Of a stretch of DNA of 64,000 nucleotides, positions 9,451-14,298 are shown one piece after another. The DNA comes from Orbicella franksi (Eukaryota): the NCBI GenBank assembly GCA_964199315.1, contig OZ116704.1, positions 14,198,001 to 14,262,000 of the forward strand, in the 5' to 3' direction. The position numbers and the translations under genes are program-made. The notes beneath the pieces are model-generated. The model was given only the letters and a program-made list of their open reading frames with translations, was not told the origin of the DNA and searched no databases. Position 1 is the stretch's first letter, and every line of letters begins with the position of its first letter.

Positions 9451-12400
9451 ATGTCAAAACTACTTATCCTTTTTAAACATTTCAACATGGTGCTTCTTCT
9501 TTCAGTGGAAAGCTGGTGTCCTGCGAAGAAGGCAGTTTGTGGTAAGACCCCACTTGTGGTAAGAAACGTAACTCCTTTAGTCAGATTAGACATACTTGGG
9601 CTCTTTGAATAAAATTTTGGTGCTTGTAAAAGCATTGCGTTTGAGCTGCCGAAACATAGAAATCGTAGTATTTCAAACGTGCTTAGCATGTTCATCGCAA
9701 GCCCACCCTGAAAAGGAAAATCCTTTTGAAACTAGGAACGGGACAACTGGAAACTTTGCTGTTACACTGAAAATATTTGTTATAGTGCGATTTTGTACAA
9801 ACATCATGAACCTCTTCCTATCATAGCACCACATATATTTTCACGTCTAATGAATACGTTTATTTCGACAGATTAGGGTCGGCAAGACAAAATGGTCTCA
9901 CACCTTGCATTACAGCATCTTACATACCTGCTGTTCACTCTTCCCTTGACTTGGGCACAAGGTAGGTCACTCAGCTATTAACAATTACTTAAGAAAATCA
10001 CTCAAGCATCAAAAACTCTGTTTAAAACAAACGATCCACCCGCTAAAGTACTGCATTTCAATGAACTTTACACTGGAATCAGAAAACGAGAAAGTATAGC
10101 ACGAAGGCTGGCGTGGTTTTCAAATTTCTATATTTGTTTCCTTCTTCAAACTCAGTGGTCATTTTGCCTGTTCACAATTGATTTTATTTAGTAGCAATGG
10201 AATATGTTCATCCGTCAGCAACCAACCAAAGGAAAGGCCTTATGTCGACTCACCGAATAACCTCAACTGAAAAATAAACAAAAAACCCTAAATGTTCTCG
10301 CGATTGCTTCAGAGACATAATCAGCTTAGAATACCTGGTCGCTAAGTGTAGTGTCGATAAAAGAGCCACATGAAGCGGTCGCTGTTTTACGGTGAGCCTG
10401 GTGTAAATCAGAAGAAACAAAAAAGCACAATCACCATATTGCGCGAGACTAAATATTCCTCTCGGCGTTTAAAAAAATGGGTAATGTTAATCTCATGTGC
10501 TGCCGGGCTCAGAAGGCAGGTATCACCGACTGTATTGATCTCTTTCTATTTCTCTCCAGTCCCATCTCCTTGCACCAGTGGTCACCTGTTCGACTTCGAA
10601 AACGTGAATGAAGCAAACTGCTTTCAGTCTAATCCACCGGGATCGGGTACAGTAACTCTGTCTTCAGACCGAAAGACCGTCAAGCAGGGACAAAAGTCCT
10701 TGAACTGGCAAGCGACTGGTGCCTCAACGCTGCGACTTTATGCCGCTTCAACATTCACCATTCCTAACAGGTGGCTCTCCCGAGGTGGCGTCAAAGTGTG
10801 GTTGTACAAAGAAAACGCCTCACCCGGAAAAACCCTTAGAGTGGAATTCAAAAACACTGTCCAGCGTTCAGCTACTACCGTCGCTCGGTTTCGAGTGAAT
10901 CTTGATTTTCAAGGGTGGAGAGGAATTTGGGTCACGTTTTCAGAGTGCAAGTTGACAAGCACAAGCTTTTCCTCAGGTGCCGTGATCAATGATGTCAACT
11001 TCGTCCTGAGTGAAGCCGACACGATCCACATAGACTTGTTAGAGTTTTCGCAGAGCGTTAGCAAACAGTCACGTGATAAAATTGTACCTCCCGTCAGTCC
11101 TTTTGGCTTAGAATTGTATGACGCAAGTAACTTTTGGCAACGGACGTACTACTGGAGTCAACAGTTCCCTCCTGCATTGCCCACGACAGTTGATCCAAAA
11201 AAGATACAGAGCTTGGAGGTTATTAAAAGCCGGCTCAGGAACTGGTACTGTGATGAAACGAAAGCATCGCCCAAGTTCCAAGGGACAAGTCTCATCAAAA
11301 ATAGATGGAATTCCCTTTCGCGAAGTATTAAAGACGCGCATTCAAAGTACCAGGCATTAACATTCGATGGAAACAAAGTCATCGGCCCACCTTTGTTTTG
11401 CAGAGACTGCAGAAACGGACAAAAATTTGGATTTATCATGGAAACAATTCTTTTGCCTTTGGCTTTGGAATACCATCTTAGATCTCGAACTGTAGAAATA
11501 GATAGTACTGTTACTGCCCAGCTGGCTAACCTTAACTCTAATCAGCAAAGCAAAAAAAACAATGCATACAAAGCTATTGCAGGCGAGCAGAGGGACATGC
11601 AAAACAAATTTAAAAGCTACCTATCCTCAACTCCCCCCCTAACCAGCCAACAAGTCAAAACTGCCATAAACTCTCTTAATGTTCATCGATTAAACAAAAT
11701 CAACAACCTCCTCGATTACGTGAAACAACAAGGATTCGCCGACGGAAGTGGCCTTGGATCTTTGGACCACGAAATGAACAAGGATGGTGCTGGATTCATG
11801 CATACTCTGTTTCTTCTCTGTGTTTCTCTAAGCCCACCTTCAAAGAGCAGATTGTTGGACCTCATTAGCACAGCAAAATGGTACAATGACTTCGGAGAAG
11901 TTTATCAGTCTCCAACATTTGAAATCAAAGGAACCACTGCTGACCGTATGATCTCGCTACTTCTGTTTAGACTCATTATAGTGTTGGTGATGCCACAAGA
12001 CACTGATGCAGAAAAAAAAGCCAAGATTCGGGACATGGACGCTGTGCTTCGATGGATAAATAACGCTTTAGCAGTGAACGACGGTCTTGGAGGAGTGATC
12101 AAACCTGACTTTACAGGACATCACCACAAAGCGTTTTATGGATCAGCGTATGTGCCACAAGCTTTGCACAATGCAGCTTTGGTTCATTACCTTCTTGGAG
12201 GAACGGAATTCGTTCTATCGACAACATCGGTCAACAACATCAGGCGAGGACTTGAAACGCTGCGTCTCATAGCGCTCAAGTATTCCACTCCAAACGGTGT
12301 TAACGGACGGTTCCCAAATTATGTCAAAAAGGTTCTCATCAAAGCAGCATTAGCAGGCTATGCTTACATCAGCGTTGAACATCCTTCCGTTCTGCCTTCT

Positions 12401-14298
12401 GTGACACCAACAGGAATCACTGTAACCAATGTGAAAGGCGCAGAAATGTTCTTGCGGTTATATGATGAGAGCGACCCAGATGTGGATAATTATTTAAAAG
12501 ATGGAAAAATTAGGAAGGGCAAGTACTATTTCAACAGTTTGGGATCTCTAGACATTATGAAGGCAGTAAGTAGAAGTATTGTTTTTTCATGCTTTAAAAA
12601 GATCAAGTTCATTCTAATTAATTACAAGGTAAAATGCCAATGGTAAGCTTTATCTATTTACCAGATGTTGATGGAGTTTAAACAATATAATTTAATTTCT
12701 GGAGGACGAACGTCTGATGTTTACTTCTAACGGGAACGAATATATTTCTCAGGATCGCCGATCTGCAACGGTTTCCTAACTACTAATCGTTTAATACCAT
12801 CCTCTTTTATAAAAGCTGATCAGGTATGTTTAAAATCTCTTTTGTCTTTTTTCAGGTTGTATCCGCCGCTACATCTAAAAGCATTTCAGCTGAACCGTCC
12901 CCAGAAGGTCACTGGTCAAAGAACTTCGCCGTTCTATCGGTGCATCGGCGCAAGCAATGGGCTGCTTCTTGCAAAGGATTCAATCGCTTCATTTGGGACT
13001 ACGAAAATAAGCCGCACAAAGAGAACATTTATGGAATGTTTGCTAGTCATGGCGCACTTCTGATTGCCAACAGTGAATCACTACTTGGCGTACATGATGT
13101 CCAAAACGGATGGGACTGGGCTAAAGTTCCAGGGGCAACAACAATCGCGATTGGAGATCCAAATCTGAATGACTTAAACATAAATAAAGCGAGGAACTAC
13201 AATCGAAAGGATCTTGCTGGAGGTCTTACATTTAAAGGTACGGGATCCTTGGAAAACGGGATATTTGGTATGGACTTTAAACAACCAGATTACGGATTGA
13301 CGGATTGGCGAGGGAGTATCGACCTTGAGTTCAAAAAATCGGTTTTCTTCTTTGAAAACCTGCTGGTGTGTTTAGGAAGTCACATCACGGCACAAAACAC
13401 TAATAGAAAAGTCATTCAAACAACTCTTTTTCAAGACAAGTTAGTAAGTGGAGTGAGTTCGTCCTTCATAAAAGTCAACAACGTCAAAAAAGCCTATGCA
13501 GATACATTGCCTGTCGAAACACCGACGACTGCAGCCAGAAGCTACACATCCCTCACTGATGCAAAAGGAAACTTCTACTACATACCAAGTCCCAGCAAAT
13601 CAATCCTAAAAGTTCACGTGCAAGATCAGACCTCAAAGACCGATGACGGCGAAACAACAACAACAGGCCGTTACGGTACAGCATGGTTCCACCATGGTGC
13701 CACTCCCTCCGACAGCGATTATGAGTACGCTGTTCTGATCCCAACACAAAGTTATCATGCAACATTAGCCGACTTGGCAACGGCCCAGGAAACACAAGGA
13801 AACAAAGTTTACACAGTTCTCCAGAAAGATTCAACTGCCCATGTCGTCCAGTTTCTCAAATCACCAAAGTCATGGACAAGCCTCAACCATCCCATTACTG
13901 GTTATGTCATGTTTGCAAGAGCCACACGCCTTCCACGTGCTGGTCCAATAAATAAAGTAGGAAGCGGCAACTGCCTTATCATGGCTGAGGAAACTTCACA
14001 GCATATCTTTCTCAGTATAAGCATTCCAAGCTTGAATCTTCATACCGCAACGGATCCTCTCACTAATTCAGGTGACGTAGGGCTGGAAGAATTATTTCAG
14101 TCATCAAGTGCGGAAAGAGAAATAGTCGTCACGTTAAAAAAGGAAGTGCAGAAGAGCATCGTCTCGGTCCAAACTCATGGTGAACCAGACTGCTACAAAC
14201 CCAACGTGTGGATTGTTCAAGGCAAGAAAGTTCGATTTTTGAATCTTAAGAATGGCTTTAGCGTAGAAGTCAAATTGAAGAAGAAGCCACGTCAGTAA
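9451..14298 (+). CDS. Secreted polysaccharide lyase family 8, chondroitin sulfate ABC lyase-like (~1179 aa); exons 9451-9541, 10560-12565, 12856-14298
   Basis: Exon 1 encodes a signal-peptide-like leader (MSKLLILFKHFNMVLLLSVESWC) and ends G|GTAAGA in phase 1, matching acceptor TCTCCAG|TC at 10559. Phase-0 intron GCA|GTAAGT ... TTTCAG|GTT. Total 3540 nt in frame. Contains an N-terminal Lyase_N-like region (F.GWRGIWV), a catalytic motif KPDFTGHHHKAFYGSAY (12101-12151), NGRFP (Arg at 12308), and Lyase_8-type GWDWAKVPGATT and KKSVFFF. Confidence 0.88.

Follow-up and report, generated by a model that had tools for sequence, protein, structure and literature searches.

Introduction

The closest described enzymes of the chondroitin ABC lyase type, which belong to polysaccharide lyase family 8 (CAZy PL8), are chondroitinase ABC I of Proteus vulgaris (PDB: 1HN0 and 7EIP) and an enzyme of Bacteroides thetaiotaomicron (PDB: 2Q1F). 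Genes of the same family have already been annotated automatically as 'chondroitin sulfate ABC exolyase' or 'exolyase-like' in several cnidarian genomes, namely those of Oculina patagonica, Montipora spp., Stylophora pistillata, Nematostella vectensis (for example UniProt A7S592), Xenia sp., Paramuricea clavata and Hydra vulgaris, and the presence of cnidarian glycosaminoglycan (GAG) lyases was remarked on in a 2017 preprint, which reported such Lyase_8 proteins also for sponges and the majority of choanoflagellates and favored vertical descent (bioRxiv 10.1101/211789). Here, we analyze a gene of this kind in the coral Orbicella franksi. It lies in a 64,000-nucleotide stretch of contig OZ116704.1 (positions 14,198,001 to 14,262,000 of assembly GCA_964199315.1), which is called the window below and whose first letter is position 1. 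The coding sequence (CDS) is 9892-9961 + 10560-12565 + 12856-14298, and we consider it quite probable that the coral has here a functional nuclear gene encoding a secreted PL8 enzyme of the chondroitin ABC lyase type, whose family was transferred once from a bacterium to the cnidarian stem.

Like the Proteus enzyme, the coral protein has three domains in the same order, its counterparts of the catalytic tetrad can be aligned, and the fold match has E values of 2e-19 to 3e-20. It differs from that enzyme in sequence, with only ca 18-19% identity where the two N-terminal domains are aligned by structure, and in having one residue more from the catalytic His to the Tyr. The coral gene is, moreover, eukaryotic, with introns and a eukaryotic-type leader, and the activity of its product is predicted only. 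In Foldseek, the Bacteroides enzyme is the structure that matches best (E 1.2e-23, 680 aligned columns), and it also gives the best sequence match of the catalytic domain. It belongs to a bacterial subclade with a shorter His-Tyr loop, whereas the coral protein has the longer loop, as do most other bacterial homologues.

The annotated cnidarian genes share both family and architecture with the window gene and form one clade with it (support 100/100). The large exon is ca 65% identical to the best named coral homologues, from Oculina and Montipora, and 43% identical to the most distant one. The window gene differs from all of them in being a distinct orthologue or paralogue, with its closest named relative in Montipora. 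Published transfers into Cnidaria that are cited in the literature concern stinging-cell genes (Denker et al. 2008) and the Hydra PPOD lectins (PMC3531485). The lyase resembles such domesticated bacterial genes in being apparently restricted, among labelled animal sequences, to cnidarians, in having introns and a predicted secretion signal, and in its putative extracellular target. Unlike those transfers, the lyase family has no dedicated published analysis that we could find, and its tree leaves the direction of transfer formally open.

Results

On the forward strand, the window contains two long open frames, 10370-12646 and 12826-14298. Starting from the ATG at 9892-9894, an uninterrupted frame of 1172 codons can be followed across three coding exons, giving a protein of 1172 amino acids. 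Public RNA data were mapped to positions 9200-14700 of the window, and the resulting joints define the following structure, all on the forward strand. A non-coding exon of the 5' untranslated region (UTR) occupies 9506-9541, with the acceptor cttctttcag/TGGA at 9505/9506 and a second, alternative donor site at 9558. Contigs from one RNA study link 9541 to 9872 and those from another link 9558 to 9872, both with GT..AG borders. The first coding exon, 9872-9961, is 90 nucleotides long, has RNA joints on both sides and canonical splice sites, contains the start codon, and ends in phase 1. It is followed by intron 1 of the coding region (9962-10559, GT..AG, phase 1), located two residues past a conserved Trp.

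The large exon, 10560-12565, encodes Lyase_N, a beta-sandwich at the N-terminus, and Lyase_catalyt, an alpha-helical toroid, as assigned by Pfam, by sequence search of the PDB and by AlphaFold2/Foldseek. The codons of His545 (12122-12124), Tyr554 (12149-12151) and Arg607 (12308-12310) in this exon were checked. Intron 2 (12566-12855, GTAAGT..TTTCAG, phase 0) separates the catalytic domain from the Lyase_8 domain. The last coding exon, 12856-14298, encodes the Lyase_8 super-sandwich and the C-terminal region; here the codon of Glu742 (13003-13005) and the stop codon TAA (14296-14298) were likewise checked. The 3' UTR runs over 14299-14430, with AATAAA at 14408, and the RNA contigs end at 14426-14430, ca 20 nucleotides beyond this signal.

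An earlier note on the window had proposed a frame of about 1179 residues with two introns, in which a signal-peptide exon at 9451-9541 was spliced to 10560. The frame is indeed intact and the CDS does have two introns, while the length is 1172 residues and the proposed 5' end was wrong. The second of the proposed joints, 12565/12856, is present in RNA contigs from two metatranscriptome studies of corals as well as in a single raw poly-A read, and the orthologues L097 and L098 are likewise split into two open frames at this position. The first, 9541/10560, has to be abandoned. No RNA joint corresponds to it, as the contigs instead connect 9541 to 9872 and 9961 to 10560; a TAG at 9874-9876 closes the frame opened at ATG 9451 once the exon 9872-9961 is included; and the homologues match the N-terminus that starts at ATG 9892. 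This N-terminus, MVSHLALQHLTYLLFTLPLTWAQ (start MVSHLALQHLTYLLFT...), is recognizably homologous to the N-terminus of Oculina P0016 (MYNFVVFQRLCYLLFT...) and, in the alignment with the homologues, stands at the right distance ahead of the conserved FDFE motif. A hydrophobic leader on an exon of its own does thus exist, at 9872-9961 and not at 9451-9541, a stretch that instead contains the non-coding exon 9506-9541.

This leader has 23 residues, with a hydrophobic core of moderate hydrophobicity and a T-W-A/Q site (...LTWA/Q), and it is encoded alone on the phase-1 exon. It is a predicted signal peptide, from which we infer that the protein would be secreted; the leaders of the paralogues are clearer than that of the window protein. 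In Hydra P0301, an intron in phase 1 follows residue 25, at W-K-E/G as compared to W-A-Q/V in the window gene, so that position and phase are alike. The leader-exon intron is the only one that is apparently common to coral and Hydra, which fits an early gain of a eukaryotic leader exon. We also considered an intron at the domain boundary shared across Cnidaria, but this was not upheld. The coral intron is in phase 0 after residue 692, while that of Xenia is in phase 1 and 8 columns upstream of it, that of Hydra is in phase 1 and 21 columns upstream, and that of Nematostella P0139 is located elsewhere.

Three Pfam domains score above their gathering cut-offs in the protein: Lyase_N (PF09092; 66.3 bits, E 3.8e-18) and Lyase_catalyt (PF09093; 126.9 bits, E 1.4e-36) in the first long frame, and Lyase_8 (PF02278; 107.9 bits, E 8.1e-31) in the second. 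Against the PDB, the C-terminal frame matches the Proteus chondroitin ABC lyase I entries 1HN0/7EIP with E 1e-32 over residues 8-403 and the Bacteroides entry 2Q1F with E 1e-27, and all three entries are matched by the N-terminal frame as well. For the 668 residues of the large exon, AlphaFold2 gave a model with a predicted local distance difference test score (pLDDT) of 89.4 and a predicted template modelling score (pTM) of 0.91. In a Foldseek search of the PDB with this model, the three top matches are 2Q1F, 7EIP and 1HN0 (E 1e-23 to 2e-19 over 645-680 columns), and those that come later are unrelated sandwiches resembling carbohydrate-binding modules, which cover the N-terminal domain only. 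The fold comparison concerns the large exon, and the C-terminal domain is matched by sequence.

Four residues of the coral protein, His545, Tyr554, Arg607 and Glu742, align with Proteus His501, Tyr508, Arg560 and Glu653 (numbers counted from HMMER alignments), which we take to be the catalytic tetrad of the chondroitin ABC lyase. The catalytic His, Tyr and Arg that the earlier note had picked out are therefore retained, together with the Glu. The His, Tyr and Glu do not vary among 62 aligned family members, of which 23 are cnidarian and 39 are bacterial. The Arg is invariant in the 39 bacterial rows and is present in the window gene and in every hexacoral sequence sampled. It is replaced by Ala in four of the five sequences of the Hydra group (P0301 from Hydra, P0148, P0149 and P0299) and in one octocoral group (P0138 from Paramuricea, and P0125), all of which retain His, Tyr and Glu; activity may be altered or lost on these branches. 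On the basis of the domains, the fold match and the tetrad, we assign the window protein to the PL8 polysaccharide lyases of the chondroitin ABC lyase type, as the earlier note had done.

That note had also remarked that the His-Tyr spacing is one residue longer than in chondroitinase ABC. This is true in comparison with Proteus, and it is no oddity of the coral protein, since nearly all bacterial homologues have the longer state. In the tree, the shorter loop is confined to a subclade of four rows (P0195, P0207, P0236 and P0240), which includes a named Bacteroides locus, and the PDB alignments show it in the solved Proteus and Bacteroides thetaiotaomicron enzymes. The long spacing was accordingly dropped as a mark of divergence.

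The gene is clearly under purifying selection. The ratio of nonsynonymous to synonymous substitution rates (dN/dS) is 0.29 relative to an orthologue that is 92% identical in DNA (L097), and 0.17 relative to one that is 75% identical. It is also physically part of the animal genome. The window is located at 14.2 Mb on its contig, called C7 here, in an assembly of 497 Mb and 805 contigs, and it also holds collagen and immunoglobulin (Ig) exons and a reverse-transcriptase open reading frame (ORF). The spliceosomal introns confirmed by RNA, the animal flanks, to which the earlier note had already pointed, the position at 14.2 Mb on the contig, and the occurrence of collagen/I-set sequences downstream of the lyase gene in another coral together exclude contamination.

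The window gene is one paralogue of a multigene family that is found in Scleractinia, Actiniaria, Octocorallia and Hydra, and it is thus not private to Orbicella. A search of 5.8 billion proteins gave 133 matches, of which all that are named come from the stony corals Oculina, Montipora and Stylophora, with several paralogues per species and the label 'chondroitin sulfate ABC exolyase-like'. A profile search of 1.84 billion cluster representatives gave 1824 relatives. Cluster look-ups added Nematostella, with at least five genes that UniProt has contained since the first genome, as well as Actinostola, two octocorals (Xenia and Paramuricea) and Hydra vulgaris. The latter is labelled via one deep-branching group, and its gene extends over 24.8 kb on a 56.7-Mb chromosome. 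When P0148 and a profile were used for word-index searches, only five Hydra-type members and no further named medusozoans were obtained, and a feature search with the Lyase_8 exon (Protein Atlas) returned bacterial clusters only and no eukaryote.

The Orbicella genome itself contains at least five further lyase loci, one of them a pseudogene. The copy on contig C2 is 65% identical and has an open frame, the one on C10 is 51% identical, and those on C4 and at C14:15.7 Mb match as separate exon-like fragments. The pseudogene, at C14:13341540-13345533, is 42-47% identical and has nine or more stops across both halves.

Three trees were calculated: a FastTree of 130 rows, a quick IQ-TREE run with 64 rows, and a careful IQ-TREE run with 54 rows, the LG+C20 model and chondroitin-AC-like outgroups. 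In all three, every labelled eukaryote falls into one clade (support 100/100, stem 0.64). Its internal order, with the Hydra group opposite (Xenia, (Paramuricea, Hexacorallia)), is that of the cnidarian species tree, with later duplications. All labelled sequences outside this clade are bacterial and represent at least nine phylum-level groups (Bacteroidota, Planctomycetota, Verrucomicrobiota, Latescibacterota, Bacillota, Armatimonadota, KSB1, WS1 and Kiritimatiellota). Among the best 150 of the 1824 profile matches, for which 30 clusters were looked up and 79 bacterial loci could be named, there was no labelled eukaryote other than cnidarians; most profile matches carry no taxon label, and the collection searched includes EukProt entries. 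Latescibacterota account for 31 of the 79 named bacterial loci, and single genomes of this group (L022-L071, chromosomes of metagenome-assembled genomes) have three or more lyase paralogues. A donor among the Bacteroidales was suggested by FastTree only and was not upheld by the mixture-model trees, which gave first a Planctomycetota-like sister and then a polytomy.

Upstream of the gene, at 5377-6974 on the forward strand, there is a truncated tandem duplicate of its promoter-proximal 5' region, identified by a blastn self-match, tblastn and the search of the coral's own genome. In the self-match, 5377-5987 corresponds to 8967-9586 (87%) and 6003-6974 to 9828-10799 (88.6%). The duplicate comprises the leader exon, a degenerate signal exon and the first ca 240 nucleotides of the large exon, after which it breaks off, and its start codon is mutated to ATA at 6067-6069. 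The two copies differ in length at 9587-9827, where a stretch of 241 bp within the first intron of the main copy lacks a counterpart in the duplicate, which has 15 bp there, probably as a result of an insertion after the duplication or of a deletion in the duplicate.

The RNA contigs show an apparent backward joint from 9959/9961 to 9504/9506. At positions 9512-9923, however, all 12 of the variant letters in these contigs equal the bases of the duplicate, and the backward joints can therefore be read as splicing from donor 6136 of the duplicate to the acceptor at 9505/9506. We thus read the mRNA in the sampled corals as starting in the duplicate, with an exon ending at 5942 and the exons 6047-6136 and 9506-9541/9558 as leader, and with translation from the third or fourth exon. 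This is an example of a partial duplication that supplies an upstream transcription start. Both the corrected start at ATG 9892 and the leader from the upstream partial duplicate matter for cloning the gene.

As for the remaining features of the window, two adjoining long ORFs of 221 and 588 amino acids at 16812-19240 on the forward strand have no Pfam match at E 0.001. Retroelement ORFs, with RVT_1 at 24230-25138, lie between the lyase gene and the collagen triple-helix and Ig/I-set exons, which are found downstream at 36773-50777 (+), an interval that is wider than its counterpart at L097. At this coral locus, collagen and I-set calls are located at 13272-14004, ca 3.4-4 kb behind the lyase gene.

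Discussion

The occurrence of the family across many bacterial phyla, as opposed to a single eukaryotic clade, makes one ancient transfer from a bacterium into the cnidarian stem the most economical reading, and we consider it the most likely one. As the family is common to stony corals, sea anemones, octocorals and Hydra, any transfer would predate the cnidarian radiation. In such a scenario, the family would have entered the cnidarian stem once from a bacterium, and the transferred gene would then have gained a eukaryotic leader exon and introns and been kept since by purifying selection. The earlier note had envisaged a domesticated horizontal transfer that gave the animal a GAG lyase. A bacterial origin stands as the simplest account of the single cnidarian clade, while the gene is by no means private to Orbicella, and its nesting within the bacterial sequences is not proven by the tree.

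A number of points weigh against the reading of the locus as a secreted, active and bacterially derived chondroitin lyase. The bacterial backbone is a polytomy, the apparent sister of the cnidarian clade differs among the three trees, and in the approximately unbiased (AU) test a tree with all bacterial sequences together is not rejected (p = 0.119). All labelled rows of the trees are cnidarian or bacterial; the preprint reports Lyase_8 proteins in sponges and choanoflagellates. The RNA consists mostly of Logan contigs of related corals, 95-99% identical to the window, and it speaks to presence and splicing, not to level or tissue. The best 11-mer Kyte-Doolittle score of the leader is only moderate, 1.53. 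Our full-text searches of the literature, most of them aimed at the lyase of cnidarians or corals, found no study of a cnidarian chondroitin lyase, the preprint being the sole mention. Finally, membership of PL8 does not fix the substrate, since the PDB matches include xanthan and hyaluronate lyases and, going by the title of a paper, fungi have PL8 alginate lyases.

The AU result also bears on the main alternative for the origin, in which a GAG lyase dates back to the ancestor that animals share with choanoflagellates, persisted in sponges and cnidarians, and disappeared from the other animals. This is the scenario that the preprint's survey favors, with a Lyase_8 protein in 18 of 21 choanoflagellates and, among animals, in sponges and cnidarians only (bioRxiv 10.1101/211789). 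A position of the cnidarians outside all bacterial ABC-type sequences goes unrejected at the above p value, and the family, which has the age of Cnidaria, shows the branching order of the species tree. However, the survey relied on a single domain, Lyase_8, that occurs in every PL8 subfamily, so that shared presence does not demonstrate orthology, and the passage is missing from the published eLife version. Although the collection that we searched includes EukProt, the best 150 profile matches hold no labelled eukaryote besides the cnidarians, and more than 100 bacterial clusters score above anything from sponges or choanoflagellates. We therefore judge vertical inheritance to be rather unlikely. 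Far less probable still is that the locus represents a decaying or non-catalytic relic, such as a binding protein or pseudogene, or a bacterial contaminant. In favor of such a reading are the pseudogene with nine stops at C14:13.34 Mb, the truncated copy 3.8 kb upstream of the gene, and the Ala in place of the catalytic Arg in the Hydra group and in one octocoral group. The window copy, on the other hand, has an uninterrupted frame of 1172 codons and an intact tetrad, its RNA is spliced, and its dN/dS values are 0.17-0.29. Of its three spliceosomal introns, two are inside the CDS, and the gene lies at 14.2 Mb on contig C7 with animal genes and retroelement ORFs on its flanks.

With bacterial transfer as the preferred origin, we turn to the possible function. 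By homology, the lyase would cut uronic-acid-containing GAG chains by beta-elimination. In the roles known for the Proteus tetrad, Tyr554 would act as base and acid, the uronate carboxylate would be neutralized and positioned by His545 and Arg607, and Glu742 would keep the His/Arg network in place. Every characterized relative with the Lyase_N + Lyase_catalyt + Lyase_8 architecture cleaves, to our knowledge, chondroitin and dermatan sulfates, and the most likely substrate of the coral protein, as predicted from its relatives, is chondroitin or chondroitin sulfate. Such material is available in cnidarians: Hydra tissue and cuticle contain chondroitin and chondroitin sulfates (PMC3531485), and a passage in PMC10548089 cites work on non-sulfated chondroitin in developing cnidocysts. 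Candidate roles are thus the remodelling of the animal's own chondroitin, in the cnidocyst, surface coat, mesoglea or skeletal matrix, and the digestion of prey or the spreading through its tissue; the earlier note had proposed matrix or mucus remodelling or digestion, which would likewise be candidates.

It is possible, although we lean against it, that the protein is an active PL8 lyase with another natural substrate. This might be the extracellular matrix of prey, in which case the lyase would serve in digestion or as a 'spreading' enzyme of venom, or a different uronic-acid polymer, for instance a component of mucus or an exopolysaccharide of microbes or algae. There are multiple copies in the family and some duplications are specific to single lineages, as is common for digestive and venom enzymes, PL8 as a whole covers several substrates, as noted above, and corals live with microbes and algae as dense partners. 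Among relatives with the three-domain architecture, those that are solved and named are, however, all chondroitin ABC lyases. A more specific proposal, which we put forward as improbable in its entirety, is that a bacterial lyase was captured once by the cnidarian ancestor and kept for more than half a billion years because it processes the animal's own chondroitin. Its candidate targets would be the non-sulfated scaffold of developing stinging capsules, the chondroitin-rich surface coat and the skeletal organic matrix. If true, an eliminative GAG lyase would for the first time be given a physiological role in an animal, and one more gene of bacterial origin would have been built into a cnidarian-specific structure.

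In relation to the existing annotations, what is new here is the corrected gene model, the pan-cnidarian extent of the family and its branching in the manner of the species tree, the evidence for constraint, and a bacterial origin that is graded as likely while unproven by the tree. Whether the gene is an ancestral holozoan one or a bacterial import is of consequence also for the gene content of the first animals, as the answer changes the reconstruction made in the preprint.

The breakdown of glycosaminoglycans in animals is generally attributed to hydrolases. If an active eliminative lyase has been retained across Cnidaria, it would depart from this rule, and it would do so with a clear biochemical read-out. 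The old age of the family, its duplications and its conserved active site argue for an important job in matrix, cnidocyst, mucus or prey processing.

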